Of a DNA stretch of 64,000 nucleotides, positions 31,260 to 62,741 are shown one piece after another. A program made the position numbers and the translations under genes. The DNA comes from Podarcis erhardii (lineage: Eukaryota), in assembly GCA_964252035.1 (NCBI GenBank), contig OZ176201.1. The stretch is one strand, 5' to 3'. The stretch's first letter is position 1; the number at the start of each line of letters is the position of its first letter. The notes under the pieces were generated by a model, which saw only the letters and a list, made by a program, of their open reading frames with translations, ran no database searches and was not told where the DNA came from.

Positions 31260-31635
31260 ATGTCAGTCTCGGATTCCGTTCTCTCCTTCTATCAAATGGT
31301 TTCCCGTAGAAAAAGAATAACAGCCGGTGCCTGTAGAGAATCGAACTTGCGTCGCTGCCTTTCCACCTCGGACTTAGTGGCTCTGGGTGTGGGCAGTACG
31401 TTGGGTGCAGGGGTGTATCTCTTGGCAGGGGAAGTAGCCAAGACCAGCGCGGGCCCCAGTATCATCATTTCCTTTTTGATTGCTGCTCTGGTGTCCATCC
31501 TGGCAGGACTGTGTTACGCTGAGTTTGGAGCCCGGGTGCCTTTGACCGGATCAGCTTATCTCTACAGCTACATAACAGTTGGAGAGCTGTGGGCATTCGT
31601 CACCGGTTGGAATCTCTTGCTCTCCTATATAATTG
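31260..31635 (+). CDS. SLC7A2-like coding exon 1 (MSVSDS...WNLLLSYII)
   Basis: 376 nt from ATG, donor |gtatca; TM1-TM3 CAT motifs. Confidence 0.95.
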
Positions 31636-34600
31636 GTATCAACAAGTTTTGGGCTTCTGTGTTTTGACATCTACCATGTGGTTTCATTGATAAGCCAGAG
31701 AGATGGGCCTAAGAAATAATAACTAGGCAGGCAGAACTTTTTTTAAAAAAAGTTGATGTGAGTTGAATTTGTAGCTCAGAGCATGCAAAAGGTTCCAGGC
31801 TCAGACTCTGGTATTTCCAGTAAGACTGTGAAAGGTCCCATTTTTAATCCCTGGAGCACTGTTGACAGTCAGAGAAGGGTCTAAGGCAGCTTCATGTGAA
31901 TGGTTCCGACAACCACATCCACGCATGCCCATTTCATCATTGGAAAACTTGCGTGGCATTCAACTAAGTTTTTCTGTTAGTGCAAGGATTAGTGCTAGGG
32001 CAAGGGGATGTGTGCCCCCACACTATCCCCAGATCTTCTCTGGAGGCTTGGGAGAATCTGCAGAACAAATTCAGGGGAGAGAACCAGAGAACGTTCTGCT
32101 GCAGAAGGAGAAATCCTTGCACTGACGGACTGTTCACCTAAGCACAATGTTGAATGCAACCCCTAGACTACACACAGTGTGGATGCAAACAAATGCTGCA
32201 TCTCCTGTCAAGAAATGATCCCCTATTTCTTTTGGGCCTCAGGGTATTTAGTCTGCGGTTTTCCAGTGATGTGATGGGCATGAGAACTTCCACTACCAAT
32301 TGTTGGCAGCCAGTCATTTATTCATTTGAAATAATGATTAGCACAAAACCATGAAGAATCCATATGTGAATACAAAATGTCAGTAGAGCAGAATAGGTCA
32401 GTATACACTTATTTAACATGACCACCCTCCAATTTGATACAGTGACAGGACATATCTCGTGCAGAGGGGTTTTTTTTACTGCAAATAATGTGGTCATTTA
32501 AGACACATATTTATCTGGCACATTTTGTACCCAGCCCTGATCCAATGAAGGTCAGTATAGAAATGTTTTGAATGATAAAATAAAATCCTATCAATGTCTG
32601 ATAACTAAAAGTTGCTGCTCATTTGACTTCCATGGGAATCTTATATGATAGGAGAGCTTCCACTGCAAGTTCAAATCACGGTGGGTGCATCATTCCCAAT
32701 TTGCAAAAAAGTGGGTTGAGTGATAAGCTTTTTATTTTGTACTTGTTATTTGACATAACATAGGTGATGTGTCGTCTGGACTGTCAAAAATGCAGTGTTC
32801 CCTATAAAAGCAGGATGAGCGTAAAAACAGCCCCCCCCCCAATAAACTGAGATGAGAAGACAGAATGAGGAAAAAAAATTATGCAGCCAAGGGGTGAAAT
32901 GGGCGAACACAGAGGCAAGAAGAAAGACATGCTCTTTGTAGTGTCATATATAATGTATGTGCTGCCCACACAGCAGTTTAAGGCTGACATACTTCCTTTG
33001 AAAGAGAGTGCTAAAAGGGCACAGCTTCATAGTACACAATGGACATCTTATACCTGAGAATGCTGCTGTTTCGCATGGACCATCAGAGGTTCATAAGCCT
33101 TGAAAAGCTGATACTTTATACCTGCGTACATAGAACAGTACATAGGGCCCTGCAATATCCCTCATTTTTAAGGTTCAATGTACTGTACCCATATTTGGCA
33201 GTGTTATCTTTAAATTGGCTGATTCTCTACAGGTACCTCCAGTGTAGCCAGAGCATGGAGTGCTACTTTTGATGAGCTCCTGGGCAAACGGATCGGCACC
33301 TTTTTCAGCACCCATATGGCCATGACCTCTCCAGGACTAGCTGAATACCCTGATATCTTTGCTGTTTGCCTCATTGTCCTATTGACAGGTATGCTTGTAC
33401 TGATTTTTTTAAAAAAACTATTGTAAGGATCCTTGAAACCCACCCTGTACCAATTTTATTGGAGATTGCCCATTAAATTTATACATGCAAGGAGTTTTTC
33501 CCTTCCCACCATGGACTTAATGCAACGCTGACAAATTGGTTTTGAATAATGCTAGCATCTCAGTATAGTTTCCAAACCCTGTAATTGTCACCCACAGTAG
33601 GGTCGGGGGAGAAATTAACTTGGGTTTGCATTTAGCTTACCTAATTCACATTTTCAGAAACAATAAGCCCAATTCTGAAACAGTACCCAATTTGCACTTT
33701 CTGAAGCCATTCATGAGCACAGCAATCCTTTGAAATTCACACTTATTCAAATTTTGCACTGCAGTTTTCAGCCAAGTAATGTGAATAACAAAGTGTGTAT
33801 ATAAATACATACGCATGAATGACAATAACATCCAAGATGCATTATATATGGGAAAATTGCCTTGCAAAAAGGTAAAATTGCATATAAAAATGTTTATACT
33901 AGGAAAAATTCTCGCAGAAATGCTTATTAATTTTCCTGAGAATTTCTTCTTAAAAGACATATGCAAACTTGTGGGAATGTGGCAATCTGAATTTAAGATT
34001 GGAAAAATGAGAAATGGAGAGAAACCAAAACTGGCCTATTCACCCATCCCTACCGACAGGTCTTTTGCATTTACTCTGTTACTGTCTTTCTTGTTTCTGC
34101 TGGACTTGCCACTTGTTCTTTAACAGTTCTCCGTGGTTTCAAGCTAGGGTCTTTCTCAGCCTTACCTGAGCTTGCCAAGAATTGAACATGGGACCTTCTT
34201 GATGCAAAGTCCAGTAGTAAAGGACTAGAGGACATGCTTTGTGGAGCCAGTGTGGTGTAGTGGTTAAGAGCGGTAGACTCATAATCTGGTGAACCGGGTT
34301 CGCATCTCCGCTCCTCCACATGCAGCTGCTGGGTGACCTTGGGCCAGTCACACTTCTCTGAAGTCTCTCAGCCTCACTCACCTCACAGAGTGTTTGTTGT
34401 GGGGGAGGAAGGGAAAGGAGAATGTTAGCCGCTTTGAGACTCCTTCAGGTAGTGATAAAGCAGGATATCAAATCCAAAACTCTTCTCTTCTTCTTCTTCT
34501 TTCCATGCAGAAGGTCCAATATTCAATTCTTGGCAAGTTCAGGTAAGGCTGGGAAACACCCCTGCTCTCAGGGTATGCTCTCAGGGTTTTCCATATGGTA

Positions 34601-37600
34601 GCAGCAATTGCTCATATCTACTGTACTTTGCAAAGGACACTGCCTCAGGCCTCCATCCATAATAGTTGTGAGGCCCAAGCAATGAGACATTGTATCCGTT
34701 GACTCCTTAGGTCTTCTCTCAGCTGGGGTAAAAGAATCAACCACAGTGAATAAAGTCTTCACAGCTGTCAATGTGCTCGTCCTTCTATTCATTATAATCA
34801 GTGGATTCATCAAAGGGGACCTGAAGAATTGGAAGATGAGCAAGAATGATCTGTTAATGACTGCTACCCTCAGATTTAGGTAAGAGAATGGCTACACAAG
34901 CTCTTGGGCTGCAGTAAACACAGGCCACGCGGGTTATATTTCTACAGAGGTTACAAATTATTTAAATATCTATTTGCTGTCCTTTCATGAAATCCCCAAA
35001 CAGCTACCTGACTTTGCCTAATGATAGGACAGATCCATGCCCACCTACCATATTCCTGCCTCCTTTGCTGTACTTGTCTACCAACTATATCCAATCAGAT
35101 CCTTCTGACATTGACTTCCTTTATGTCACCTTCCTTGACAGGAACCAATCCGGCAATGGAACTTGGGACTTTGGGGCTGGAGGGTTCATGCCCTATGGCT
35201 TCAGTGGGACCTTAGCTGGAGCTGCTACCTGCTTCTATGCTTTCATTGGGTTTGACTGCATTGCGACTACAGGTAAGCAAGAAAGAAGACAATTACAAAA
35301 TGTCCATGATTGATAACCGCATCCGACACCTAATAAAGAAAGGAGAAAATATCTATTCACCTCACAAGGGAGCCAGTTGTTATTAAAGCTCTCCTGTGTC
35401 CAATTCCCCTCCTAAGAGGAGTGGAATGTGTTGTGACTTAGGCGTTGCTGTTGTTGGAACAGAAACCCATAGGCAATCCTTTTGGAATAACCAAAGCACC
35501 ACGTAAATCTTTGCTTAATCTCTACAGTGACAGGTTAACCATACTCATGTGAGACAATGTGTGGATTTTAGAATGGTGTGACTTCTTGTGTTTATGTTTA
35601 CCAGGGGAAGAAGTAAAGAACCCCACAAAAGCCATCCCAGTGGGGATTGTTCTCTCTCTGCTCATCTGCTTCTTAGCCTATTCCGGTGTTTCAGCTGCCT
35701 TGACCCTGATGATGCCTTACCACCTTTTGGACACCATGAGCCCTCTGCCAGTGGCTTTTGAATACAATGGATGGAGCATGGCCAAATATGCTGTGGCTGT
35801 GGGGTCTCTCTGTGCTCTGACCACCAGGTAAGGACAGGATGTGCAATTTTCCCCATGCTTGCATTTTAAGGATATAAGAAGAGCATTGCTGGATCAGACC
35901 AAGGGTCCATCTAGCCCAGTAGTCTGTTTCCAGCAGAAGCCAGAGAGATGCTTCCAGGAAGCTCATATACAGAGCATAGAAGCAACACCCCTCTTCCCCA
36001 TTGTTTGCTCCCCAGTTAGTGATATTTAGAGGTTCTGTTTATCTAACATGATACTAATTGACCTTGATAGACTGGTGCTCTATGAAGTCATCTAATTCAC
36101 TTCCAGGGCTGTCACTGTATCCTGCAGCAGTAAGTTTTATAAATTAATGGTACCTTTTGTACCTTTTGGATCAATGTAATTAGCTGACCCCACACTCTAG
36201 TATTATAAGGGAAAAACACAGTACCAGTAATCTTCCCTCTCTCATTTTCTCTCTCTCTATAATTCATAGTTTCATAAAACTCTACTATCATGTCTGCCCT
36301 TGGATCCTCTTTCTACAAAGCTCTGGTCCTCTGGGTCATAAAGATTTCCGTTTTATGATGGTGATAATCATAACATCTCTTTGTGTATCAGGCATGTTTT
36401 GTGCACCAGCTACCAAGGTGCAAACGTGATTTCACTCATGAGCAGAGATGGAGCTTTGGGGTACAATGAACTCCTAAGGCATTGCTTTGACCTCAAGATC
36501 TACAGATCTACACCACTCTGATAATAGCAATTAATAGTTTTAAGACTCATTTCGACTGAAGCAATAGGAAATCCTGGAAATTTGTTCTCTATGCTTGATA
36601 AAGGTCTGCTTTATTGTGTGTAATGCAAGGTCTCTTGTACATCTTGTTGTACAAGAGTCGGGTAAAGAAAAGGAAGAAGAGGCTATGATCTTGAGAATTT
36701 TCTTCACTTTCTCTGCCTTCTTGTGTAGCTTGCTAGGTTCTATGTTCCCGATGCCACGGATTTTATTTGCTATGGCCAGGGATGGACTCCTCTTCCAATC
36801 TTTGGCCAAAGTGAGCAGCCGACAGAGCCCAGTGATTGCAACTCTGGTGTCTGGAGCTGTTGCAGGTATGCATGGAAAAAGGCTCTAACATTGACTAGAC
36901 CTCAGAATGAACCTGCCAGTAGACAATGGACTAAGAATCTTACTTTGGACTTGATCTAGTTTAAATATGAAATAAGGAACCTAAGAAGACCCCTGCTGGG
37001 TCATATTTGGGTGCACACATAGTCCAAAGCAAGTATGGTCAACATTGTGTCCTCCAGATGTTGTTGGACTCCAATTCCCATCAGCACCATTCACTGTGGT
37101 CAATTGTCAGGGATGATGGGATTTGGAGTCAATAAACATCTGGAAGGCACCATGTTGGTTTTCCCTGCTTGAAAGCAATACTAGTTGCTTTAAAAAATAT
37201 GTCTAGAAACGGGACATTAGGCTAGCATTTCAACACGGAGCAGGTCAGCCTGTGGGACTGAATGTTAGACTGCAAGAGTTCCTTGACCTTCCCCATGCCA
37301 GAATCAGGTGGATTCCAAGGTGTATCTCCATATGCTTATAAAATGCAAGCTTTTCATTAGTGACTAGGGCCTGTTTCCCTGCTTGCTTTGCTCACCAGCA
37401 TTATCTATTCCCACAACCCCACAACCCTCCCACCTCAACCCCTTCCTCCTCCCTTCACACTTGGCCAACTTCTCCTGCTGCTTTACCTAAACATCTCCCA
37501 TCTATCCCAGGCATAATTCCTCGCTTCTCCTTGATCACATCTCCATCCTCTGGGTCCCTCTTCCTCACCTTGCCTTGGCTGCCTCCTGCTCACCTGCCTG

Positions 37601-40600
37601 CATCACCATCCTCTTGTTCCTTCCTTCTCTCCTTGCCCTGCATCTCTGTCATCTGGATCCCTCCTCCTCTCTTCTCCTTTCTTGCTCCACCTGCCTGCCT
37701 GATGGTCTGGCAGCTCATCACACTGAAGTTCACAGTGCCACTTGTCTGTGACTTCCTTATAATTTTATATATTAGAGAGAAACAGAAAGAGACTCCAGCC
37801 AATACTCTAACACCTTCTCCTCATGAAGAATGAATCCATCGAGCCATTTTTGTGGTTCCTTTCTAATATTGTCTTGGATTGAATAAGGACAAGGTAAAGC
37901 AATCATTTAAATGATCCATGTTATAACCTCATATCTCAGTTTCAAGGAGATTGCACTGGAGTGCCACACTGAGCACATGAGAGACCACTTAGGTGTGCCT
38001 TCCACATTTAGCTTGATGAAATGCTATAGCTGACAAAAAAAGTCACTATGGATGGATTTCTTTTCTTTTTCTCTTTTTTTCTAAACAAGATTATGTAAAT
38101 TGCCTCTCTGTCAGGATGCTGCCAGCGGCTCCCAGCTGGTTGCCCAGGAAGTAGAAGGACAAGGGAAAGTTTCTTACTGTCCTTTTTAATTCAGTATTTA
38201 CAGAGAGAGGCTATAGAACCCAGCCTCTTGGATAATGGTGATGTCCCGAGTAAATCTCCATCCCCCGTCTCTCCCACTTCCTCATCCGTCACTTCTACGG
38301 GTGCTGCTACGTGCCCTTTGTCTTTGAGCTCGTTGCTCTCCTACTTTTAAGGCTCGCCGGGTTCTGGGAGAGGGAGGGGCTGGGATGTTTTCTAATGACA
38401 CCGTGCCAGCCAGCTGCTGTTCCGATTGTGCCTCCTCCTCCTCCTCTCCCATTATTTCCCAACTTTCCCCCTCATCTGTCTCTGAGCTATGACATCCCAG
38501 AAACCACTGTTGTAAATCTATACTGTCTTCCTCTTCCTCCTCCCTGGGAGGATCAGGATGGGGAGGCGGTCTCCACCATTCCTCCTCTGCCCAGTCCCTG
38601 ACACCCTCGTTGAAAGGAGGTCCCCAGGCATGTACTCTCCTTGATGGGAGGGAAGCTCGCTGGGAAAGGGTTTCTGCAGGAGACCATATCTTCATCTATA
38701 AGGCTACAAGAATTAGCAGAAAATATTTGGTGGTGTTTTCTACAGGCCCTCTTCCTTCTTCTCACAGGTTTAATGGCTTTCCTTTTTGATCTGAGGGCCT
38801 TGATTGATATGATGTCCATTGGGACATTGCTGGCCTACACACTAGTAGCTGTCTGTGTTCTTCTCCTCAGGTAATGAGTTGTCCGTTATTTATTTCTCTC
38901 TGATGCAGATATGGAGTGCTCATCATGACAACATCCCATGTAATATAAATGTCATTCCAGAGAAGTAGCTTCATTGGTCTGTTTTACTTTTAAAAAAAAG
39001 AACCTCCCCCTATTGTAGGATAAATAAAACACCTTCTGGAGCTGGCTTATGGAGAAAATGGAAGCATGGCGGTCTTTATTCCAGATTAGTTAATCTAGAA
39101 TACATGTCTGTGACTCTTTCCATTATCAACACTGTCTGCACTCACCACTGGCATGAGAACTCCAATAGGCTACCCCTGATGAAATGCAGGGGAAATCAAA
39201 ATTGGCTGGGTAGAATTTCAAACCATGCTAGACTAGCTTCTATTTTACACATTTTAAACAGCCATACTGACAGTGATGCAATTATTTAGCAGCTGTTTAG
39301 TCTGCTTTGTAGCAATTATCTCCTTGAAACTAGTAAGATATCAGTGGGAACAGCTTTTGGATTTCTTAACCCCACACACAAGTAAATGATAAAAGAACAA
39401 TTCATCATAAAAGAGATTATTCAATCGCAAGGCACAGTCTGCAAGGCCTCCTTGGGCATTTCTTTGTTCAGAATCTTGTTGCATGTGAGTGAATGTCATC
39501 TTTACCTTCTCTGAGGCTTTCTTTGAGCTGGACATTCTTGGAAAGCTTGCACTGCCAAGACCACTTCTACCGTCAGCCAGGGATGCTGCAGATTCCACTG
39601 ACAAAGCTATCTGGACACAAGGCAGATACTAACTGATGTGTTCATTGATGTTTAACTTGCTTTGCAGGTACCAACCTGATCCCAGCTCCCTTGGCCCACC
39701 AGAAAAGAAAGGTCTAAGCAGAATACCTTGGGTGGACATCCTCATCCATCCTCAGATGATCCCGAACCAGAGCTCCTCCACATTAGTGTCCCATTCTGTG
39801 CTTGTCATTGGTGAGTACTGGAGCATCAGTTGGAGGGGGGAAATGCAGTTTGCATTTACAGGCAAACTTGCCTGATTCAGGCTTTGGGAAATGATACCCG
39901 GCCGCTGTAAATATTTGTACTTCTTTGAATTTTGCACTGTATACAAGTTATGCAGTGACCAAGCAATGTATACATCAGTGCATTAGGTAATAGAAAATAT
40001 AAATATTAGGGAAATGCGCTTTGTAAAAAATGTGTATATGAGGCAACTTTGCATTTAAAAAGGTACTATTAGAAGAAAATTCTCACTGAAAAATGCAGGT
40101 GAACTTTCATGAGGGTGTAACAAAAGAAATCATAAACTGATGTGGAAATTGAACTTCAGATTGGAAAAATAAGAAATGAGGTCTTTAAGTTAAGGGAGCA
40201 GGGTGAAACCAAGCAAGGAGCTGTTAACTATAAAGAATCACCCTGCTTAGTTATTACAGGCCTCACTTGAAACAAGCACAAATAACTGGTTCATAACATT
40301 ATCCGGTCAACTGAGCCTTGCCTTTATGATTAGTTCTCTTCCAGTGCACTTGTTGTGGTGCATGGGGTGGTCTTTTGTTCCAGGAAGATGCCCCCTGCTT
40401 CCTCACAGCATGGTTTTCAGAGTCCATTTTCTCTCCAGCTGTCCTAGTCTGCATCACGTGTGTGCTGAGCACAGCAGGACTGCCATGTTTGTTATCTGGA
40501 GGTGCCTGGTGTGTCACCTGCCTTGTTCTCCTCTTCCTGGGAATTCTGGTGGTGTCCCTAATCATCTGGAGGCAGCCACACAGCCAGAAGACAGCAGACT

Positions 40601-42198
40601 TCACGGTAAGGAAGAGACTTCATAATTGACACTGCCTAGCAAGCCTCATGACTATGTTTGACGTGTTGTGAATGTTCACGGGAAGCATGCATCTACCTGG
40701 GAGTAACTCAACACATAGGATTGCACTATAAGGGTACATAGAGAAATTCCTGTCAACAGGGGGTTTTCTGTGTGGGGTGAGATCCACTTCTTACCACCTT
40801 TGTTTCTGACCTGAGGGCTGTTTATCTGCTCCTCATTGTCCTCCTCTTCCCAATGCAGCCTGTGTATTGTATGTGTGTGTGTGTTTGTGTGTGTGCGCGC
40901 GCACGCCAGCTTGACAATATCCTCCTTAAATTGTGGTAAACTGGGCACAGCACTCCAGGTGTGGGAGTACTTTTCTCCCTGCATGCTCTCTCAGAGTTAC
41001 CAAGGGCCATATCAGGGAATAATATTCTTTTTCTAACGTTCATGTCTAATCTCAAATTATCTCTGCACTCGTTTAGGTTCCCTGTCAGCCATTCTTGCCC
41101 ATCCTCAGTGTCCTGGTCAATAGCTACCTAATGGTCCAACTCAGCGGTGACACCTGGCTTCGGTACATGGTGTGGATGGCTATTGGTAAGCCTTTAAGAA
41201 ATGTGCCACAATTCAGGGAACTTCAGGAAATAATAATGATTTGGAAAGTAAGTGTCATCTGAATTTATTATAAGGCAGTGCTACCTAGCTCTTATCAGGA
41301 CTAATACAAGATGGGCATCAGGTTAGGCAGTGCCCTGATCACCACGGTGGGTGTGTTTGGACCCCCTGGTCTTCCTTCTTTTGCCAGGATTAGGCAGCAC
41401 AGCAGCAAAGATGCTGGTCTAGCTGCTGAACCAACCATTGCATTTTCTAATATTTTGCTCCTTCTCATGGAATTGGTTCATGCATACCTGGTGGTTACTT
41501 GATGACTGCAGTATCAGCACTGTAGCACACCTGAGGTGGAGCCAGGCAGCAGGGTATGTAAATTAAATAAAACTGATGTGTTTAAATGGTCCATCATTGA
41601 TCTAATTCTAGAGACAGAGCTTTCACATCACACATCACACTCCAATACAGTGCTTTTCAACAGAGACAGTTCAGATGTTCAACAAGGCAAGTCAGTCAGC
41701 AAGCGCCGAGTAACTAAGAGAAATCAAATTAAATCCATGTATGTGTGAATGAGTTGGTGAAGGAATTTGTGCCTAGAATATGACAGTTACAGAAGAGCAT
41801 TTCATCTATAGGCTAAATCAGGGGTAGCCAACAGGGTGCCTTCCAGACTTTGTAGACTACAACTCCCATAATCCCCTGGCATTGCCCATGCTGGTGGGGC
41901 TGGTGGGAGTTGTAGTCCAAAACATCCGTAGGGCACCAAGTTGGCTAACCTGAGCTAAATGTCCTGATGTGATTTCAAATGAAGGAGCTTTCTCTAATAC
42001 GGATATATTTGTGAGGGGGAGGGTCTATCTGGGGCATTGTTGGTTCACCTTGTCCTCTTATGTGCTGTAGGCTTCCTAATTTACTTTGGCTACGGGATCC
42101 ACCACAGTGCAGAGAGATCCAGCCACCAAGATCCATCCCCAGAGAAGACAAAGCAGGCAACAAGTGACATGGATCCAGCTGTCACCTGGGAAAAATAA
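31260..42198 (+). CDS. Cationic amino acid transporter, SLC7A2 (CAT-2)-like paralog, 613 aa, CAT-2A-type
   Basis: Exons 31260-31635, 33233-33388, 34711-34879, 35142-35272, 35605-35827, 36729-36865, 38768-38870, 39668-39810, 40439-40605, 41077-41185, 42071-42198. Total 1842 nt, all GT-AG, phases consistent, no stops. CAT motifs [47 protein letters not shown] and IYFGYG present. Confidence 0.95.
33233..33388 (+). CDS. SLC7A2-like coding exon 2 ([19 protein letters not shown]...[18 protein letters not shown])
   Basis: 156 nt, GT-AG; lacks the extra residue that SLC7A1 and SLC7A3 have before LAE, as SLC7A2 does. Confidence 0.95.
34243..34502 (+). mobile_element. tRNA-derived squamate SINE (Squam/Sauria-like) with (CTT)n tail
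   Basis: Box A GTGGTGTAGTGG, box B GGTTCGCATCTCC, body gtgaccttgggccagtcac, tail ctcttctcttcttcttctt. Confidence 0.8.
34711..34879 (+). CDS. SLC7A2-like coding exon 3 ([24 protein letters not shown]...)
   Basis: 169 nt, GT-AG. Confidence 0.94.
35142..35272 (+). CDS. SLC7A2-like coding exon 4 ([20 protein letters not shown]...GFDCIATT)
   Basis: 131 nt, GT-AG; N-glycosylation sequons NQS and NGT in the extracellular loop. Confidence 0.95.
35605..35827 (+). CDS. SLC7A2-like coding exon 5 ([16 protein letters not shown]...GSLCALTT)
   Basis: 223 nt, GT-AG. Confidence 0.95.
36729..36865 (+). CDS. SLC7A2-like coding exon 6, CAT-2A-type ([46 protein letters not shown])
   Basis: 137 nt, GT-AG; matches the CAT-2A alternative segment. 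Confidence 0.95.
38109..38603 (-). mobile_element. Putative solo LTR or LTR-like repeat in SLC7A2-like intron 6
   Basis: Termini TGTCAGG...CCTGACA, flanks CTCTC/CCCTC, AATTAAA on the minus strand. Confidence 0.55.
38768..38870 (+). CDS. SLC7A2-like coding exon 7 ([34 protein letters not shown])
   Basis: 103 nt, GT-AG. Confidence 0.95.
39668..39810 (+). CDS. SLC7A2-like coding exon 8 (RYQPDPSS...SHSVLVI)
   Basis: 143 nt, GT-AG; begins with the conserved RYQP. Confidence 0.92.
40439..40605 (+). CDS. SLC7A2-like coding exon 9 (AVLVCITC...[15 protein letters not shown])
   Basis: 167 nt, GT-AG; IWRQP motif. Confidence 0.93.
41077..41185 (+). CDS. SLC7A2-like coding exon 10 ([36 protein letters not shown])
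   Basis: 109 nt, GT-AG. Confidence 0.95.
41819..41952. mobile_element. Palindromic hAT-type MITE
   Basis: TIR CAGGGGTAGCCAAC/GTTGGCTAACCTG; TSD GGCTAAAT/AGCTAAAT. Related copies at ~37040-37170, ~42296-42430, ~43750-43860, ~46495-46600, ~58805-58935. Confidence 0.8.
42071..42198 (+). CDS. SLC7A2-like last coding exon ([13 protein letters not shown]...VTWEK*)
   Basis: TAA at 42196-42198; candidate AATAAA at 43378-43383. Confidence 0.94.
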
Positions 42199-45320: not shown

Positions 45321-45375
45321 ATGAATTTCAAAGTGCTGGCTGTTTTGAGCTGTTTCACCCTCCTCTTTGTTTGGG
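45321..45375 (+). CDS. PDGFRL-like exon 1, signal peptide (MNFKVLAVLSCFTLLFVW)
   Basis: 55 nt, ccaggATG, strong donor |gtaagt. Confidence 0.88.
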
Positions 45376-48300: not shown

Positions 48301-50141
48301 CCCCTGAGAAAGTGCTTGTGGATGGACTAGGCATCTCGTATGATGTGAAGAGGGGCTTCATCATCCACCGCCCACAACCTTCCCATGCTGGCTCCCTCTT
48401 CTGCATGGCCAATGTGGATGGAGTGAGGCAGATCTCCACAAAATACATGCTGATTTATGTGAACTGTAAGTTGCCTTAACAATTAATCATCTATCTCTCT
48501 ATCTCCCAAGTGTGTGTATGTGTATAAGAGAGAGAGGGAGAAAGAAAAGTCCACCAATCTGCTTGCCTTTTTCATTTTAATGTTTTTTAAAACTCAGCTT
48601 GTCAAATTCAGATTAATTCAGCCCAAACTGTCCCAAAAGGGTATGTGGCTGCTTTAGAGATAAAAGAAGTTCATCTCATCATCAAACAGTTCCATTCTTT
48701 TGCAAAAGGGAATGTGACTATGAGAATGCAGGTGTGTTCATTCTATCCAAGGGATGTGCTTATGATCAGGGAGATTCAGTCATGCCGATCAAGGAAAAGG
48801 AGTCTTGGTTTGCTGACCACAGGTTGCAAAGGAATGCTCAAAACTGTTTCTAACCTAATTTAAAATGATTTATATACAACTCCCAGGCAATCAGGACCCA
48901 GGCAGAATCTGGGAAAGCCTGTGGGAGGTATTGTCACTTTTCATAATGTCCACTGAATGAGGCCTTTTTCTCCAGGCAAGAAGTGATTCTGATTCGGCAG
49001 GGAGTTGGCGGCACCTATCGAAGTTTAGAGTCATTATTCTAGGTGACACCTTGATGCAAATCTTTGCCCATTGCTGGACTTGCACAAAGGCTACCAGTCA
49101 GATTCAGAAGGCTTCACAGGCAAGGCCTTGTCGCAGAGCATCACTAAGGCCAGAGAGAGTGTGGGAGAGGCCTCAGACTCAGGATCCACTGCCCCATTTC
49201 CATTCAGCCTGTGCTCCAAGTGGGAGAACTGTAGAATTTCGCCATGCCATGCCTATCTAACAACTCCACAAGGAGCAATGGGGGAGTGGCAGGAACTGAT
49301 GCCTATATGCTGGTTTCTTTTGGTGTGTGTGTTTTATTTCCAACTCTGCAGATCCTTCTTCAGTTCCCAAGCCAGCTATCAGAGCTTCAGTGGCCTCCTT
49401 CCATGTTGGAGACAATTTCAATGTCACCTGCACTGTCTTTGGGGAACCAGAAATTGCTGTTGATTTCACGTGGGAATATCCAGGACAGCAAGTAGGTAAC
49501 AGGTTGCTGATGGGGTGAGTGGGTGTGGGATAAGAAAAGTGGCTTGTACTGTAACAGTATGGGTCTTTTAAGCCCGTCTCCTTTCCTGCTGATCTGTGGA
49601 ATTTCCCCCTTAGAAAGTGAACAAAGGCTAGCCCAACCCACAAACCTAGCCAATGAGGGTGTACAAAGCCAAGCTGAATAATGATTGGCCTGACCTCCTC
49701 AAATGAGTAGGCCAGAATGAAAACATAAATTGTTCCTCTGCAGATAAACACCAGGCAACCTTGTCATGCGGTTTGCTTGCACCTGAATAATTTCCAAGTT
49801 ACAGGAGTGGGTGCCGCTAGAATTCCACACACTGGGAAAAGCCACTGCTAAACTCTCTTGTGCACTGACTGCCATGTGCTCTGCCATGTTTCTCAAATAA
49901 TGCCCTTCCTCACTTTCAGATTGGCAGACCACCCTATGTTCGCGAACGCACAGATTTGGTGCGGCGTGGTGGGCAGGTGCAGCAGGAATCTGAGAGCATC
50001 CTTTACGTTGATGAAGCACGTGCTGTGGATGATGGTTTGTACACCTGCACTGCTGAAAATCTGCAAGGAGGCACTGCAGTGTCCACCCGCATTCGCTTGG
50101 TTCCAGCCTCACCAGCCCCAAAGAAGGCAAAGTCTGGGTAA
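45321..50141 (+). CDS. PDGF receptor-like (PDGFRL) paralog, secreted Ig-domain protein, 399 aa
   Basis: Exons 45321-45375, 47046-47382, 47526-47677, 48172-48465, 49352-49491, 49920-50141 (1200 nt, phases consistent; intron 3 donor is GC). Signal-peptide-like N-terminus, three Ig-like segments (ADTGEYSC, LPCQVTNP...LFC, NVTC...DDGLYTCTA), no transmembrane or kinase segment. Confidence 0.93.
46630..46867. mobile_element. Tc1/mariner-type MITE, second subfamily, decayed right end
   Basis: TA+CAGTGGTACCTCGG; internal aaccaaggcacggc...ctgattgg...caggaagc shared with 25458. Confidence 0.75.
47046..47382 (+). CDS. PDGFRL-like exon 2 (Lys-rich segment and start of Ig1)
   Basis: 337 nt; GQFQKVSNTLVLRAGEALDLRCKGKTVKWRYP resembles PDGFRL. 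Confidence 0.93.
47526..47677 (+). CDS. PDGFRL-like exon 3 (IKHFERHSQLTVANSTAADTGEYSCW...KTFIFFT)
   Basis: 152 nt; only a GC donor at 47678 gives the required phase 1. Confidence 0.9.
48172..48465 (+). CDS. PDGFRL-like exon 4 (Ig2)
   Basis: 294 nt, GT-AG; ELFVP...LLPCQVTNPAAKVTLHREFP...YDVKRGF. Confidence 0.95.
49352..49491 (+). CDS. PDGFRL-like exon 5 (Ig3, first part)
   Basis: 140 nt, GT-AG; NVTCTVFGEPEIAVDFTWEYPGQ. Confidence 0.95.
49920..50141 (+). CDS. PDGFRL-like last exon (Ig3 end and basic tail)
   Basis: 222 nt, DDGLYTCTAENLQG, TAA at 50139-50141; ATTAAA at 50273-50278. Confidence 0.94.
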   Translation: MGRPPYVRERTDLVRRGGQVQQESESILYVDEARAVDDGLYTCTAENLQGGTAVSTRIRLVPASPAPKKAKSG

Positions 50142-51353
50142 CTGCCTCTGGTCCTGCACTGCTGAAAGTCCAGGTCCTACTGGAAATCCAAAGACTAGAG
50201 GCGGCCATCAAAAACCGAGGGATAAACAGTTGCCTTCTTTTATTTTGTCCTTTACCCTTTCATGTTTGACTCATTAAAGTAGCACAAATCTTTTTGAAGC
50301 AGAGGCAGAGTACCTTTTTGCTCGCAGGGATATTGTGAAAGACAGGAAAACGCTCAAAGATATTCATGACTATTGCCAGAAAAATGTTATCTTGGGAATT
50401 CTGGCTCTGTGTGAACATCTTCATTCACAGGGTCAAACAAGATTATTGAGATCTATGATCAGATCTCACCTCTCTTTAAATGTTATATATATCAGCCTGG
50501 AGAGACTCCAGACGGGATTGGGACCATTTGTCTGGTTACGGACGGTTAACCCTGCAATTTTCCCAATTTTCCCTGCCAGCAGCTGTATGCCCTATTACAG
50601 CATATATGCGTGTACATGCAACAGTAGTTTCGAAGGCAGATACGCATGAGCAGAATTTCAGTAAGTAGGCGATTTATTTTTTAAAATTCCCCAGCACTAC
50701 AGTCCAAATCTGTATTACCCACATCCATATCTACCCCGTAGGTCCTATTGGACAAAATGTAGAGCTGGGAGTTCTTGCCGTCTCATCTGCTCTGGCCCTT
50801 GTGGAGATGGTAAAACCTTTATCAGGTAGCAATATGCATCACTGAATGCTTCTTAAAAAAAAAAAAAAGGAAAGGAAAAAAGGCCTTCACAAAGAAAACT
50901 TAAGAGAGAAAATTAGAGGTAGAACAACCAGAGATTTTCCGGAAGGCACTGAAGGCATTTTGGCAACATCAGTTTATTTTATTTTATTTTTGTGACTTTA
51001 CCCAGTTATTTATGATGTCCATTTTCATCTGTACTTCTTAACTGGTTCTAAGTAACAAGTTCCAGGGTGCCTGATTTTCCTCTCTAGGTCTAAGTAGCCA
51101 ATTTTAGGTGCAGGCCCAGTGATTTTCCACTGAACTGAAATGCTCTTCACTATAAAGTTTTTTACTAGAGGCTGCAGAGTCTTCAGAAGCATCACCCATC
51201 AGGGAAGGGTGTTTAAATTCTTTGGCTTGGATCCAAGTGTTCCATGTGTGTAGCAGTGGGCTCCTATAAACCATCTCCCCAGACTAAATAGCCAGATGGA
51301 GAAGTCAGGGCTGTGTGTACACAGTTGTGCAGGTCCCAAGCATGTACTCAGAT

Positions 51354-51672: not shown

Positions 51673-51698
51673 ACACACACACACACACACACACACAC
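51673..51698. repeat. (CA)n microsatellite
   Basis: Seen directly. Confidence 0.95.
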
Positions 51699-56380: not shown

Positions 56381-59300
56381 CTACGTAGCGATGAGTGTTG
56401 CCTCCGTGGAGATAGGGAACGGGTGGGGAGAGTCGCCATTCAGCACTCGGTACAGCAGCTCTTCCTTCTCCCGGTGAGCTTGCGCTCGCAGCTGCGACTC
56501 CTTCTCCAGGGACTCGCGGAGAGTGAGGAGCTCGTCGGACAGTTGCCTGCAGGGCAGAAGCACAGAGTCAAATGACTTTGGAGTCCTAAAACTGGTGGAG
56601 AGGCTGGTGGGGCCAACTTGGACTTGTAGCAGGCAACTGCGTTTGCCCTAGTCTTCATCCCCAACTGTTTGCTGCTATGAAGACAGGAGGGAAGACTCCC
56701 TCTACTGAGATCAAAATGACAATCACAACACCACCAAGTGGGGCCTATGGGGAGGGAAAAGTCCATATTGGTGCCAAGCTTTGTGGAGGGACCAAGCTCC
56801 ATTCAGGCCCCGGGGGGAGGTGAAGAGATATGCCTCCCCTTCCATAGAGCCCCTGCTTCCCATAGGCTGTCTTCACAATGGGAATCAGGCTCCCTTGCCC
56901 CTGTAAGTCAAAATGAACACATAGCAGGCAGCTACGCATCTTAAGAGAGTGGCCCTCAGTTTTCATCATGAGCACTTTCTCACCTCTGTCAAACGAAGTG
57001 GGAAGATGTAATACTGTGGGGAAATGTAATGGTATTGAAATTGGGTATGGGGAACATGAAATGCACACACTACAAATGTTCAGAAAAATGCTTTTATAAA
57101 CCACCAAAGACTNNNNNNNNNNNNNNNNNNNNNNNNNNNNNNNNNNNNNNNNNNNNNNNNNNNNNNNNNNNNNNNNNNNNNNNNNNNNNNNNNNNNNNNN
57201 NNNNNNNNNNNNNNNNNNNNNNNNNNNNNNNNNNNNNNNNNNTCACAATAGCACACTGACACAGGAAGTTGAGCAGGAAGCACATCAGAGAAGAGGTCTT
57301 CTCTAGCACACAGATTTGCTACTATGGTAGCTGGTTTGGCACTGCCACAACTATGCTGTCTGTGCTGATCCTATCATCATTGTTGTAATTATTATTTTGA
57401 TTTATAGGGTTTCTTACCCACCCTTCTCTAGAAGGCCCAATGGTGGGTTACAACAATATAAAAACACAATTATTAGCGTCACTTAGAACAATGTACAGTC
57501 TCTGGTTGGCTGCATCTGATTATGCAGGACAAGCACACTGAATCTAGGTCCTGACCCATAGGCTTTCACTGGGCCCTCTTTAGGTGCACCGTCCCAAGGG
57601 CCCTTCACCAAGGTGAAGTGGGAAATAGATGCTTACTGCAGCTGAAGGTCTCACCTTGTCACTGCCATGTGGTTCTGCATCCGAACTTGGAGATCTTCAT
57701 TCTCCTGTTGAAGGGTTTTAACTTTCTCCTCGAGCAACAAATTTCTCTCCATCTGTAAGCAGGCCAAGGGTGTGATCAAACACCAAATGCAATTGCAACA
57801 CAGTTCACCCCAGCTGCAGGTATTCCACGCATACAATAACATCAAGAAATCTCCCAATTAGGTATTTTAAAACTTTGTAGGAATATGTCCGCATGGAACC
57901 CCCTTCTTATTAAATAAGTTGGAGGTTATGTCACTCTGGAAAGTCTGCAAGAGGCACCAAACGTGGTGTCTGCCCTGTCTCTGATTGCTATGGCAATGTA
58001 GGCTTGTATGTAGTCTGCCAATTCAGGTTCATGTATCTCTTTTAGTTCAGAGCTATCTACCCATATGATCCATCTACCAAGAAGAACTTCAGTAGTATAG
58101 CAGAACCCTGGTTTGTTTTTCAAGAGAGTTGTAGTTGCCCAGCTCACTTCACAAGCAACTGAGCTGCAGTGGTGGCCATTTTGGGCCAGTAAGCATTTTC
58201 TGAACATGGAATTGCTTCCGTCAAACACAGCCATGCTCCATTCACCTAGATGTTTCTTCCCACAGACCTTAAAGGATTAATACACCTATAATCAAGCTTT
58301 GTCTTTAGAATACTCTTTGGTCCACTCCAGACATCCTTAATCCATGATGATTTGTGCTCATGATACTACCAGGAGAGTTTAATCCTTTCCTTTCTGCTGT
58401 GGTCCCAACAAAAATTCCCCACCTGAAGTAGCTAGTTGCACTGGAAGGGGTGTTTCCACACTGGTGTTGATGGGAGTTTCCCTCCCAGGATAATAGCTTC
58501 CAAGAAAGTGGCCAATATTGTTGAGATAGTAACAGAATGGGGAAGCATATGAAATGAACCCCAAGTCTTCTCATGCATTATGCTCCTAATCCCAATTAAA
58601 AGAACATTCCCCACAGCTGCTATCCACATTTGATCTCACAATCGTGAATTTCAATCAAGACACTTAGCACTGTGTGTAATTTGGCCCTGGTCTTGGATGT
58701 TGGTCTTGCTGGGGGGTGGGGGGGCGGCGGTGCAGTTTAAAGGCCAGGATGCAGGACTTGGAATGTGTTGTCTTCTGCAGGAAGCCACAGAAGTCTGGCG
58801 ATCAAGGTTCTGAAGAGCTTTTGGCCCTTCAGATGTTATTGGGACTCCAACTCCCATCAGCCCCAGCTGGCATAGCTAATGGTCAGGGATGATGAGAGAT
58901 GTCATACCCAAACAACTGGAGGGTCACAGGTTCTCCATCCCTGCTCAAGAGAAAGTGTTTGTGGTACTCAGAAATTAGCTAGTTTTGAATGGCAGACCAC
59001 AAGGTCCTCTGTGCAAGACCCCCACCAAGTCTTAGGAATAGCTATGAAAATGAGTACATTGAACCCACCACTGTTTCCAGGTTGAGCAGCTTTTTGTCCA
59101 AGTTGTGAATGCGTTCATTCTTCATCTCAATGACAAAATGTAGACTCTCTAGTTCCTGTTCCCAGAACTGGCTGGGACTCCCATAATCCTAGAAAACAAC
59201 AGGGGAAATGTCAAAATGCACCCTCAACTAGAAAGCTGGCAAAGCAGAGAACCTCATTAGCAACAACAACAACAAAAACTTATACCCCACCCATCTGGCT

Positions 59301-62300
59301 GGGTTTCCCCAGCCACCCTGGGCAGCTTCCAGCAAAATATAACAATTCTTCAAATATTAAAAGCTTCCCTAAACAGGGCTGCCTTCAGATGTCTTCTAAA
59401 AGTCAGATAGTTATTTATTTCTTTGACATCTGGTGGGAGGGCATTCCACAGGGTGGGCGCCACTACCGAGACTACATCCAGGGACTCACTGTCTCCTCAG
59501 TCATGTGAGAGACTAGGCCTACAATTCTAAATCCTATGGTTGAGAATAAACTCCATGATTAGAATTGCACTACAAGGGCTAATTTGGTCATGCAAGTACA
59601 TTATTCAATGACTTAGAGATTAGTGAGTGCACCCCCTTCACTGGGAAGCGCTGCATTGAACAATATTCTCCTTGTGGTGTTTTGTTCCATTACAACTGCT
59701 TTCACACATTCAAGTCATCAATCTATGTTGCATTCATTGGGTGAGAGATCAAGTATTGCTTTCACTTGTAGAGGTGTCAAGTGGACTTTATTTGTGCTTA
59801 TGGTACGACAATGCCAAATGGATGCTTAGAACAGAAGTAGGGGTAAGCACTCTCCTCTTTCCCATTTTCCTGTTCAATAAGCATTGTTCTTTGGACCCAT
59901 ACATTGGCCTAGTTTGCACATCACACTAAGGACTCATCCACACTTCCATTTGCCCTGCTGCTTCCTCTTGGAAAATCCACTGCTTACTGCCAAATCAGAG
60001 CAAGCATCTATCGTATTTAGAGCTAATGAGTGCGTTTTCCATGGGATCATGGAGCAAAGGCAAAACTGCTTGGACCAGTTCCTAGAAAGCATGGGAAAAG
60101 CAGAGAACCACTTGGACCTCTGCTTTCCAAGCATGGGACAAGCATAAGTGTGGACAAGCCCTAAGTTGAACCACAACTTAGCTAGGATGCACAAGCAGGG
60201 ATTATCATGGTTGCTCTGCTCCTTCCTGGTTTGTTTTGCTACTATGCTGAGCTAAGCTATGGCTTGGCTTAGCAGGTTTCCTGAAACCAGGATCATGGTT
60301 TAGCTCCCCTTGACAAACCACGAGCCAAAAAGCATAGTACAGGCTTTGGTTCCAACTTAGGGTTAGTCTAGAGAGAGCTAAATAAGTCCCAGTTCAGAGG
60401 ACACACTAAGCCAATCCATGGCTGAGCTCAAGAATGATCAAGGAGGAGCAAAGCAGCCACGATCTCCTCACACATGGTTTTATGTTAAACCATGGTTTGG
60501 CTTAGCATTACATGTAAACTATGCCACCCATCATTGTCTTTGTTTTCCCAGTAGTGAGAGAAGGAGGTAACATCTATGTCTTCATTAATAAACAGGTGGA
60601 GAAATCCCATCTAACTGATCGTGGCTGGTTTTGTTTTTTGGCACCTGGATGTGTTTCTTATAATCTCTGCTCAGGATTGACTCTTCCACCCGTTTCATTT
60701 TCTCTTGGAAGGACTTCATCTGGGAACTCAATCTGTCTACAGTCTCCTGGAGAAGAAATATGAGGCAGAATAAATCAGTGCTCCAGCAAGCTTACTGACC
60801 CGACCACCCTGAGCACGTGTGAACTATTCTGTATGCATTAATAACATTAATTTTAGTGGGTTTATAGCTAGTAGCAGATATAACTCCTAATGGCCAGGTA
60901 GCTATTAAATCCAGCAGGTCCCAGCCAGGATGACCCGGAATTATAAGTCCACAAAATCTGGAGGGAACCATGTTGGCTGCCTCTGACTTGGAGCAATTAC
61001 AGAGTGGCAGCACCTGCAAAGATGACTGGGACTTTTGGTAGGATTCGGTCAGGAGCACTTTCTCTTTGTCATGTGCTTTCTGGAGTTCTGCAAGAGAAAC
61101 AACAGACTATGGTCAGAAGAAACCAGTGGGAGACACAAGCCCTGCTCCAATCTAGCCAGGGGTTCTCTTCCATACAGAGCTGAGTACTAACACATCACAC
61201 TGTTTGTCTCAAGAGTATATTCAGAGAACAAGAAGGACAGAACGTGAATGGAACTCAGTCTTGAAATCTTTGTGGTCATGTCTCTCTTCCCTCATTTGCA
61301 CGTACCGGTAATTCTAAGCCAGACCAAATGAGCAAATCCTGCACTATCTCTCCCAGACAAACTACAAGTGGCAAAACCACAATTTCAACATGTGGTCTGC
61401 CTGGAGAGAGCTAAACCAGATGATGGGACACTAAGCCAGGCCATGCCTTAGAGCAGCACAGCAGCAGAAGGACTAGGAAGGATTCTCGCATTCTCTCTCT
61501 CCCTCTCCCTCCTTCTGACAGAGATGCTCAGCATTTAGACAGAGAGGAAGTGAAAAATTAAATAAGCGACATGGAGAGCCTAAAATGAATATGGAGTACC
61601 CAGCAGAGAATTGAAGCTTAACAATGGAAAATTGATTTAGGAACATGTTACAACATGGCATTGCTGAATGGCAGGGTGGAAAAAGTAGAGTCTCATGGAC
61701 ACACAATATTTTAACAGTGGTGTTGTCTTTTCTTGCAATGCATCTATGACCAAAGTATTTCCAGAGGCCACAAATTCATTAATGACACTAACATTTAGTA
61801 GCTGGGAGCCGAGCACTTGGCGTGCCATTATTTCTGTAATCCCTCCTCTGGTCATTCACTTTCCTCTAGGCACTTGCTGTCTTTATTCCTTTTGACAATC
61901 TACTTCCCAATTTGAAAATTCTTCTCATCATACTGCAGGGAGGGCACTTTCTTTCCCCATCCATGTTGCTGCTACTACAGTGGCGTAGCATGGGTTGTTG
62001 GTGCCCAGGGCAGGCAGGGCAAGTGAGAGGGTGAACGCAGCCCGCATCCAACAGGCTCCTTGCCCACTGCTTCCATCTGCCTGCCCACTAGACCAACCTG
62101 CCTGCTGCCACACCTCAGCTGCCAGAGCTTCATGCCAGTCATGGGGGTGCCTGGTTGCACCCCCTCAAAAATGGTCCCCCTGCCCCCCACGCTACACTTT
62201 TGCCACTTTTGAAAAGGGGAAGCAGATTGTGGTGAGTGGGGCACAGCAAGGGAGCCATGAGGAGGCAACAACAGTTCTGGGAATGCCCGTGAACAAGTTC

Positions 62301-62741
62301 TTTCATACCTGGCCCAGTAGTGCTACAATGCCAACATAAAGCTCACCAAGGGAGGGAGCAGAAGTAACTTCACCAATATTTGCTGTAGAAATGAGTTTCC
62401 AAACAGCACGTAGATTAGGCCTCCATCACCAGGGTTGAGGGTCAGGAGCGGCCTACTCAACACTGTAGTGAGATTTGCATACCATAGCGCAGGGGTGGGG
62501 AAACCGCAGTTCTCCATATGATGTTAGGTACTGTAGGAACTCCCATTGTTCCTGACTGTCCAACGACATCTGGAGGACCACAGGTTTCCCAAGTGCTTTG
62601 ATGCAAATGGAACAAAGCTTACATATTTTGCAAGCAGGTTTTTTGGCTCTCACCTTGGAGTCTCTCTTCCTGTTCTTTTTTCAGCAAGTCATGCTGCTCA
62701 GAGAGTTGTTGCTTGCATTGTAAATCCTTCTCCTTTTCTAT
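56381..62741 (-). CDS. CCDC69: Coiled-coil domain-containing 69, 3' six coding exons (5' exons not found, probably beyond the window end)
   Basis: Exons 62654-62741, 61014-61087, 60645-60746, 59069-59188, 57655-57752, 56381-56546, all GT-AG and in phase. Peptides DYGSPSQFWEQELESLHFVIEMKNERIH and EKEELLYRVL...TEATLIAT* match CCDC69. Confidence 0.96.
57113..57242. other. Assembly gap (130 N)
   Basis: Run of N in the last CCDC69 intron. Confidence 1.
59262..59470 (-). mobile_element. LINE (L2/CR1-like) 3' fragment
   Basis: (AAC)n tail followed by tttataccccacccatctggctgggtttccccagcc...gccttcagatgtcttctaaa; family call from recognition only. Confidence 0.55.

Follow-up and report, generated by a model that had tools for sequence, protein, structure and literature searches.

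Ancient paralogs of SLC7A2 and PDGFRL between ANXA6 and CCDC69 in Podarcis erhardii: a sister of the SLC7A2/PDGFRL/MTUS1 block, probably from an early vertebrate genome duplication

Two intact genes lie between ANXA6 and CCDC69 in the lizard Podarcis erhardii: an ancient paralog of SLC7A2, here called CAT2L, and a second PDGFRL-type gene, here called PDGFRL2. The window that we analyzed is a stretch of 64,000 nucleotides (GenBank assembly GCA_964252035.1, contig OZ176201.1), with DNA about 94% identical to that of Podarcis muralis. The window contains all four genes, in the order ANXA6(-)/CAT2L(+)/PDGFRL2(+)/CCDC69(-) (Table 1). We regard it as likely that this order is ancestral for bony vertebrates and that the block arose as a sister of SLC7A2/PDGFRL/MTUS1 when the genes were duplicated as a unit, probably in 1R/2R, with differential losses thereafter. 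A sequence-only reading of the same DNA had pointed to the two genes and to their mirror-like arrangement; the open frames, order, and strands that it described are confirmed here.

Table 1. Coordinates of genes, exons, and the assembly gap in the window
Feature	Position	Strand	Basis or detail
ANXA6, partly represented	2088..8842	-	phmmer vs PDB; tblastx vs chicken ANXA6 locus
ANXA6 N-terminal coding exon	8756-8842	-	
ANXA6 C-terminal exons	about 5729-5959, 5193-5291, 3618-3680, 2882-3010, 2088-2135	-	
CAT2L upstream alternative first coding exon	27587..27622	+	12 codons from ATG, then GT donor
CAT2L, ancient SLC7A2 paralog	31260..42198	+	spliced model, 11 coding exons, 613 aa
CAT2L exons 1-6	31260-31635, 33233-33388, 34711-34879, 35142-35272, 35605-35827, 36729-36865	+	
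CAT2L exons 7-11	38768-38870, 39668-39810, 40439-40605, 41077-41185, 42071-42198 (with stop)	+	
PDGFRL2, second PDGFRL-type predicted secreted Ig protein	45200..50383 (mRNA, at least)	+	spliced RNA contigs
PDGFRL2 coding exons	45321-45375, 47046-47382, 47526-47677, 48172-48465, 49352-49491, 49920-50141 (with stop)	+	
CCDC69, 3' six coding exons	56381..62741	-	tblastx vs chicken CCDC69; splice contexts
CCDC69 exons	62654-62741, 61014-61087, 60645-60746, 59069-59188, 57655-57752, 56381-56546 (with stop)	-	
Assembly gap, 130 N	57113-57242	.	intron between last two CCDC69 coding exons

Three consecutive gene pairs are paralogous between the two regions and stand in the same order and on the same strands. 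The trio CAT2L/PDGFRL2/CCDC69 has the order and strands of the window in P. muralis, echidna, and kiwi, and its mirror image, SLC7A2(+)/PDGFRL(+)/MTUS1(-), is found in Varanus. Fused database models also record the adjacency of the CAT and PDGFRL genes: one from an agamid, and one from a sturgeon that joins the SLC7A2 pair. The third pair depends on the relationship of CCDC69 to MTUS1, stated in the sequence-only reading and supported by the Pfam families MTUS1_CCDC69_CC1/CC2 and by the literature (PMC11621681). Single CCDC69 exons of the window gave no Pfam match because the pieces are too short; the family assignment is made through the collinear P. muralis gene, which carries both domains (PF27558/PF27559). 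More generally, close orthologs (P0171, P0282, P0177) served as stand-ins for the spliced proteins of the window in database comparisons.

The flanking genes are incomplete. ANXA6 was recognized by phmmer against PDB structures, with positions 8621-8851 matching residues 7-43 (E = 1e-16) and positions 2810-3016 matching residues 611-656 (E = 1.5e-41). The 5' exons of CCDC69 are absent from the window; relative to the 309-aa P. muralis product, about 94 N-terminal codons are missing. The assembly gap has flanks that map to positions 21734 and 21865 of the P. muralis locus, 130 nt apart in contiguous sequence, and in chicken the two CCDC69 exons matching its neighbors are directly adjacent, with no exon between them. 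The gap touches no coding sequence, and no reading frame is affected. A search of the window against Rfam detected no RNA family.

The age of the transporter pair was assessed in a maximum-likelihood tree of CAT proteins. SLC7A2 (clade A, support 100/99) and the clade containing CAT2L (clade B, 94/93) are sisters (A+B, 86/84); each holds both ray-finned fishes and tetrapods, and clade B evolves faster than clade A. The values for clade B and for A+B are good, though short of maximal. A duplication after the fish-tetrapod split is rejected, because the AU test against a tree uniting sarcopterygian A and sarcopterygian B sequences gave p = 0.00016. The tree and the test together show that the transporter duplication is older than the divergence of ray-finned from lobe-finned fishes. 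A search for representatives with CAT exon 1 returned mostly exon-sized fragments, and full-length matches alone were usable. Jawed vertebrates enter the tree through bony vertebrates only, and lamprey, SLC7A1, and SLC7A3 through single long-branched sequences with unsafe placement, which makes the link to 1R/2R indirect. The PDGFRL family likewise falls into two clades (100/100 each), both following the species tree and each spanning lungfish to amniotes, with the window gene in clade L2. This tree has no outgroup; being unrooted, it would, taken alone, be equally compatible with fast divergence after a duplication in the stem of the lobe-finned lineage.

The account that best fits these observations is that the three-gene block would have been duplicated as a unit before the ray-finned/lobe-finned split, which would pair CAT2L, PDGFRL2, and CCDC69 as sisters with SLC7A2, PDGFRL, and MTUS1, respectively. 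The most likely event would be 1R or 2R, the early genome duplications of vertebrates, and it is from the structure of the block and its age that we infer such an origin. The strongest competitor, in our view unlikely, is a regional (segmental) duplication of the three genes in the jawed- or bony-vertebrate stem, with no whole-genome duplication involved. What the data show directly, an age greater than the fish-tetrapod split and the joint copying of three neighbors, would fit this scenario; the data contain no tie to genome-wide paralogy, and PDGFRL2 was unseen in ray-finned fishes among the best 120 of 501 matches. However, there is a third related block, since SLC7A1 stands beside MTUS2, an adjacency named in the sequence-only reading and stated in the literature (PMC7584565; MTUS2 at 13q12.3, PMC11621681). 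At least three paralogous blocks on different chromosomes are the expected product of genome duplications. A further point against a segmental origin comes from a teleost, where CAT2L lies beside kinesin and ANAPC8 genes, away from ANXA6, PDGFRL2, and CCDC69; these neighbors would resemble the KIF20A-CDC23 pair at human 5q31.

The human 5q, 8p, 13q, and X regions would be related by paralogy. On this background, the origin by genome duplication can be extended to a fuller scheme, which we offer tentatively and with somewhat less than even confidence. CAT2L, at the 5q33-equivalent position, would be the fourth member of a 2R quartet with SLC7A1 (13q12), SLC7A2 (8p22), and SLC7A3 (Xq13), within the four-fold paralogy group that includes ParaHox and the class III/V receptor tyrosine kinases. 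SLC7A2/CAT2L, PDGFRL/PDGFRL2, and MTUS1/CCDC69 would then be second-round sisters, like PDGFRA/PDGFRB and KIT/CSF1R; PDGFRL would be a pre-2R, ectodomain-only offshoot of the kinases; and mammals would have taken the block apart in steps, with the therian stem losing CAT2L and the placental stem PDGFRL2.

We consider it very improbable that the three gene pairs were duplicated independently and that their common order is coincidental or was assembled secondarily. With an unrooted PDGFRL tree, the three duplication ages are not demonstrably equal, and this would suit independent events; but they would hardly yield three consecutive genes with the same order and strand in both blocks, or CAT-PDGFRL adjacency kept in both blocks (sturgeon, agamid, echidna, kiwi). 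Gene structure speaks against them too. Exon boundaries, as mapped, coincide within each pair: each of the 10 introns of CAT2L has its counterpart at an exon boundary of SLC7A2, and four of the five junctions between the six coding exons of PDGFRL2 fall at exon boundaries of PDGFRL (the signal-peptide exon of Varanus PDGFRL being unmapped).

The names given by NCBI, "cationic amino acid transporter 2-like" and "PDGF receptor-like protein," would suit genes that had been duplicated recently from SLC7A2-PDGFRL in lizards or sauropsids, or a translocated copy, but this possibility is refuted. Both outcomes that would have undone the sequence-only reading were looked for and did not occur: 1:1 orthology with SLC7A2 and PDGFRL fails, as the genes lie in separate clades, and nesting within the lizard genes is rejected by the trees and by the AU test. 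CAT2L falls outside the SLC7A2 ortholog clade, with Podarcis, Lacerta, and Zootoca each having a separate SLC7A2, and both PDGFRL clades are represented, by one gene each, in at least 10 of the species sampled. Orthologs extend from ray-finned fishes and lungfish to monotremes, and identity to the lizard paralogs is only 65% for CAT2L and 40% for PDGFRL2. The true SLC7A2-PDGFRL locus, whose separate existence the sequence-only reading had called for, is present elsewhere in related lizards, namely as an SLC7A2(+)/PDGFRL(+) pair on another chromosome in Lacerta agilis and within the Varanus trio.

CAT2L has an open frame of 613 aa in which every intron is GT-AG, and 600 of the 613 residues (97.9%) are identical to P. 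muralis P0171. The upstream alternative first exon joins the acceptor immediately before position 31260, and its 12 residues are present in the P. muralis model. CAT2L exons match the Pfam models AA_permease (PF00324) and PF13520, and the P. muralis ortholog carries these two together with the CAT-specific C-terminal domain PF13906. Read on that ortholog, the combination of permease core and PF13906 places CAT2L in the CAT subfamily (SLC7A1-4, SLC7A14). The glutamate of TM3 that corresponds to E107 of mouse CAT-1, where it is needed for transport (PMC7584565), is kept as E109 within the motif VGELWAF. From its sequence, CAT2L is predicted to carry arginine, lysine, and ornithine as a facilitator of system y+. 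It shares fold and domains with SLC7A2 (CAT-2A/CAT-2B; human 8p22), and both are followed downstream by a PDGFRL-type gene and then, on the opposite strand, by a gene of the MTUS1/CCDC69 type. Whereas SLC7A2 has two mutually exclusive exons 6, CAT2L has a single one, of the CAT-2A (arginine, low-affinity) type, and the loop between TM8 and TM9 is predicted to be fixed in the low-affinity CAT-2A form. CAT2L also differs in its shorter C-terminus (613 versus about 658 aa), its compact gene (11 kb), and its faster evolution. Of the words sampled from the CAT2L locus, 5-12% are present in RNA runs, an exon-sized share. Positions 36573-36635, considered as an alternative exon 6, gave a match at chance level (E = 0.6) and were rejected.

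PDGFRL2 has six exons, an open 399-aa frame with a signal-peptide-like N-terminus, and one GC-AG intron. All five splice joints were confirmed in contigs from RNA runs of a close relative, among them one 1538-nt spliced contig spanning all six exons. The product is 97% identical to a P. muralis "PDGF receptor-like protein." The Pfam domain VEGFR-1-like_Ig-like (PF21339) is found on an exon in the window, and the ortholog carries PF22854, PF21339, I-set, and Ig_3. The PDGFR/VEGFR-type Ig-like domains and a reading frame that stops after the last Ig domain, leaving neither a transmembrane nor a kinase part, fit the PDGFRL family, and the protein should be secreted, with Ig-like domains of the type found in PDGFR/VEGFR ectodomains. 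Like PDGFRL (human 8p22), PDGFRL2 has a signal peptide followed by VEGFR/PDGFR-type Ig-like domains (PF22854, PF21339) and lies downstream of a CAT gene. Unlike PDGFRL, it begins with a longer N-terminal arm rich in lysine and ends in a basic tail, and its gene is much shorter (4.8 kb versus 29 kb for Varanus PDGFRL). The dN/dS ratios against P. muralis are below 1 for both genes of the pair (0.17 for PDGFRL2 and 0.38 for its partner). Both lizard genes appear to be functional. The idea that either is a decaying pseudogene or a gene-prediction artifact, for which we found no support and only two irregularities to cite (the GC-AG intron and the faster rate of clade B), is refuted by the open frames, the spliced mRNA, the dN/dS ratios, and conservation across bony vertebrates from fishes to mammals.

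Proteins named "CAT 2-like" occur in snakes, lizards, tuatara, alligator, birds, frogs, salamanders, lungfish, and platypus, as well as in sturgeon, croaker, and reedfish (P0027, named "Zgc:175280"). The PDGFRL2 group comprises squamates, turtles, gharial, kiwi, all three amphibian orders, lungfish, monotremes, and marsupials. Its distribution is unlike that of PDGFRL: marsupials and monotremes have PDGFRL2, the chicken locus lacks it, and no ray-finned fish with it appeared among the best 120 matches. Under the duplication of the whole block, these patterns would reflect differential loss: lizards, kiwi, and echidna would have kept all three genes, and ray-finned fishes CAT2L (zebrafish zgc:175280). 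Chicken, which has ANXA6/CAT2L/CCDC69, would have lost PDGFRL2, of which no remnants were detected in the chicken and croaker loci. Platypus has CAT2L and PDGFRL2 together, whereas the pair seen in opossum and Tasmanian devil is PDGFRL2/CCDC69. CAT2L has apparently been lost in marsupials, judging from 10 kb of sequence on the upstream side of PDGFRL2 in Tasmanian devil, where no remnants of CAT2L were detected. Placentals would have lost both genes; to our knowledge, the human ANXA6-CCDC69 interval contains neither. Loss in mammals thus appears to have been stepwise, because echidna keeps the full trio and marsupials, which keep PDGFRL2, apparently lack CAT2L.

The sequence-only reading expected the locus to add a CAT ohnolog and a second PDGFRL. 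As paralogs the two genes stand, but they are not new: both are annotated in many genomes, by NCBI under uninformative names, and the novelty is modest. Zebrafish zgc:175280 (chromosome 5; expressed in adult intestine more than in kidney) has been listed as a second SLC7A2-type gene (PMC7584565). It and the "CAT 2-like" genes of NCBI are CAT2L orthologs, and reedfish P0027 groups in clade B. Our literature search found no paper on the block, on a PDGFRL paralog, or on SLC7A2/PDGFRL/MTUS1 paralogy, and none recognizing zgc:175280 as an ancient paralog retained outside placentals. The result clarifies naming: many non-placental genomes have two "PDGF receptor-like protein" genes, together with a "CAT 2-like" gene that did not arise recently from SLC7A2. 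Comparative and expression studies that took CAT2L or PDGFRL2 for orthologs of human genes would be led astray, for example studies of arginine transport in chicken or zebrafish. The two genes reveal no new kind of gene or mechanism; they may serve as natural experiments, CAT2L as a transporter fixed in the predicted low-affinity CAT-2A form and PDGFRL2 as a second protein of its type that may help explain the function of PDGFRL.

The block is also a small, clean case in which the joint duplication of neighboring genes was followed by losses that differ among monotremes, marsupials, placentals, and birds. It resembles the hidden ohnolog crh2 (PMC9353778) and the losses of sox15 (PMC8244163), in which an ancient duplicate persists in sauropsids, amphibians, and basal mammals and has disappeared from later mammalian lineages, and which were likewise recognized by synteny and phylogeny. 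Unlike those cases, two adjacent genes are involved here, with different points of loss in mammals, and the third, CCDC69, has been kept by all.

The sequence-only reading had placed intact CAT-2-like and PDGFRL-like genes between ANXA6 and CCDC69, and the gene models, open frames and spliced RNA bear this out: we refer to the SLC7A2-like transporter gene as CAT2L and to the second PDGFRL-type gene as PDGFRL2. CAT2L was assembled with a close homolog as a guide; all its introns are GT-AG, its frame is open over 613 codons, and 600 of the 613 residues are identical to those of its P. muralis ortholog (P0171, NCBI "cationic amino acid transporter 2-like"). The P0171 model has 12 extra N-terminal residues, encoded by an upstream exon that is followed in the window by a GT donor, with an AG acceptor immediately 5' of the main model. 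Single exons match Pfam AA_permease, and the TM3 glutamate needed for transport is retained at position 109. Exon 6 belongs to the CAT-2A type, matching the 2A-type exon of Lacerta SLC7A2 at 35/46 positions and the 2B type at 30/47, and no second, alternative exon 6 was found in the window. The arginine in its AMARDG motif occupies a position tied to low affinity (PMC7584565). By its sequence, CAT2L would thus be a low-affinity system y+ carrier that lacks SLC7A2's splice switch.

Features of the window (coordinates in nucleotides)
Feature	Coordinates	Strand	Remarks
ANXA6	2088-8842	-	exons match solved ANXA6 structures, residues 611-656 and 7-43
N gap	8356-8555		200 N
CpG island	22500-23000		GC 0.67, observed/expected CpG 0.79
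Repeat copy	25500-25623		
CAT2L upstream exon	27587-27622	+	12 residues
CAT2L	31260-42198	+	11 exons
CAT2L exon 6	36729-36865	+	single
Repeat copy	42301-42428		
PDGFRL2	45200-50383	+	six exons
Repeat copy	46337-46909		PDGFRL2 intron 1
PDGFRL2 intron 3	47678-48171	+	GC-AG
CCDC69	56381-62741	-	six exons; chicken gene comparison and splice contexts
N gap	57113-57242		CCDC69 intron
Stretch without P. muralis match	57803-58612		CCDC69 intron

RNA-run contigs from a close relative, at 95-99% identity to the window, cover PDGFRL2 as one spliced molecule. Four of its introns are GT-AG; the third is GC-AG once three ambiguous letters are assigned, a joint backed by the same contigs. Joining the exons yields an uninterrupted frame of 399 codons, and the product is 97% identical to the P. 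muralis "platelet-derived growth factor receptor-like protein" (P0282). It begins with a hydrophobic, signal-like segment and carries a lysine-rich arm and Ig-like domains, with one exon matching Pfam VEGFR-1-like_Ig-like (2.7e-17). Judged from this layout, PDGFRL2 may be secreted and bind a ligand or matrix via its Ig domains and basic arm. Copies of interspersed repeats in the region are 77-78% alike, and the one in intron 1 draws very high RNA-contig depth from other genome sites.

Both genes appear to be alive. Over the whole CAT2L locus, of which exons make up ~16%, 5-12% of sampled words were found in RNA runs of several related species. The dN/dS values against P. muralis, resting on small counts, are 0.17 for PDGFRL2 (17 synonymous, 10 non-synonymous changes) and 0.38 for CAT2L exons 5-11 (5 synonymous, 6 non-synonymous); long evolutionary conservation is the stronger argument. 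A search with the snake ortholog identified CAT2L in snakes, lizards, tuatara, alligator, many birds including chicken, frogs, salamanders, lungfish and platypus, and cluster look-ups added two fish members, one from a croaker and one, named "Zgc:175280", from reedfish. Identity to the lizard protein separated the PDGFRL-type matches of a profile search into two groups. The PDGFRL2 group (58-87%) comprises squamates, turtles, gharial, kiwi, caecilians, frogs, salamanders, lungfish, echidna, platypus and three marsupials, and the ordinary PDGFRL group (40-46%) comprises fishes, amphibians, reptiles and birds. At least 10 of the species sampled are represented in both groups by one protein each, under an identical NCBI name. 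Both genes are already in public annotation, with uninformative names.

The neighborhood is conserved as well. CAT2L(+), PDGFRL2(+) and a 309-aa gene(-) matching Pfam MTUS1_CCDC69_CC1/CC2 are consecutive in P. muralis, and the same trio, ending in CCDC69(-), is found in echidna and kiwi; in platypus, CAT2L is followed by PDGFRL2. In chicken, the order is ANXA6(-), CAT2L(+), CCDC69(-), with just 649 nt and no PDGFRL2 relic between CAT2L and CCDC69. Opossum and Tasmanian devil have PDGFRL2(+) and CCDC69(-) with no gene call upstream, and tblastn found no CAT2L trace in the 10 kb upstream of PDGFRL2 in Tasmanian devil. In the croaker (Collichthys lucidus, L006), CAT2L lies beside genes for a kinesin and for ANAPC8 (CDC23 type), as identified by Pfam domains, a pair that presumably resembles human KIF20A-CDC23 on 5q31. 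In human, we take ANXA6 and CCDC69 to be immediate neighbors, and SLC7A2(+), PDGFRL(+) and MTUS1(-) to be consecutive. Varanus has this mirror trio, with a 1292-aa MTUS1-type gene(-), on another scaffold. In Lacerta agilis, SLC7A2(+) and then PDGFRL(+) lie on a 75-Mb chromosome, and lacertid CAT2L is on a 124-127-Mb one; true SLC7A2 is also present in Podarcis and Zootoca. Two database models that fuse a transporter with the downstream PDGFRL-type gene, P0177 for CAT2L and PDGFRL2 (the agamid Phrynocephalus forsythii) and P0239 for SLC7A2 and PDGFRL (the sturgeon Acipenser ruthenus), are annotation errors, yet they record adjacency. Within both gene pairs, exon boundaries match wherever mapping was possible. 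The proposed identity of order and orientation between the two blocks holds, as the Varanus mirror trio and the trio of P. muralis, echidna and kiwi demonstrate.

Translocation of the 1:1 orthologs of SLC7A2 and PDGFRL is contradicted by the distinct SLC7A2-PDGFRL locus in Lacerta and Varanus and by separate clades in the trees. In the CAT tree (IQ-TREE, LG+C20+F+G4), true SLC7A2 from cat, narwhal, turtle, birds, Varanus, Anolis, Lacerta, Podarcis, sturgeon and teleosts forms clade A (100/99). Its sister (86/84), clade B (94/93), unites the window's CAT2L with sequences from sturgeon, reedfish, croaker, lungfish, amphibians, platypus, alligator, birds and squamates. Dog SLC7A3-like, pipefish SLC7A1-like, two lamprey and four invertebrate sequences fall outside, on long branches and in an unsafe order. 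This span of clade B, from fishes to platypus, also speaks against a recent lizard duplication. The best tree uniting lobe-finned A with lobe-finned B is rejected by the AU test (lnL difference 48, p = 0.00016), and the SLC7A2/CAT2L duplication therefore predates the fish-tetrapod split. The PDGFRL tree falls into two clades, both supported at 100/100 and tracking the species tree, linked by a branch of ~1.15 changes per site, with ray-finned fishes on the PDGFRL side only. This tree cannot be rooted because it has no outgroup, and the age of the PDGFRL/PDGFRL2 split is one that we infer.

CCDC69 (5q33.1) is known to be paralogous to MTUS1 (8p22) and MTUS2 (13q12.3) (PMC11621681), a kinship that the shared Pfam domains also reflect, and SLC7A1 and MTUS2 are adjacent from fish to mammals (PMC7584565), both in line with the sequence-only reading. 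The latter study describes zgc:175280 (zebrafish chromosome 5; adult intestine, kidney) as a second SLC7A2-type gene and gives no evolutionary reading. Our literature search turned up no publication on a second PDGFRL gene or the CAT2L/PDGFRL2/CCDC69 block. The block represents an ancient duplicate that some mammals no longer have, a sound but ordinary case; its origin probably lies in the vertebrate genome duplications, and CAT2L and PDGFRL2 would have been lost in placentals.

The window is 64 kb of vertebrate DNA, collinear with the P. muralis chromosome at ~94% identity, and has two N gaps. Of ANXA6, it holds only the N-terminal coding exon (residues ~7-43) and exons for residues ~535-673. 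Some 490 codons are missing, and the first gap falls exactly between these two parts; it probably conceals most of ANXA6 or marks a mis-join. The CpG island between ANXA6 and CAT2L is probably the ANXA6 promoter. The second gap falls outside CAT2L and PDGFRL2, in the intron between the two final coding exons of CCDC69. Its flanks are 130 nt apart on the P. muralis chromosome, equal to the count of N, and in chicken the two flanking exons adjoin directly in a continuous protein; the reading frames are independent of this gap. In the window, CCDC69 is short of ~94 N-terminal codons relative to the 309-aa P. muralis product. A stretch of ~800 nt in a CCDC69 intron has no match in the collinear P. 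muralis sequence and reflects an insertion here or a deletion there.
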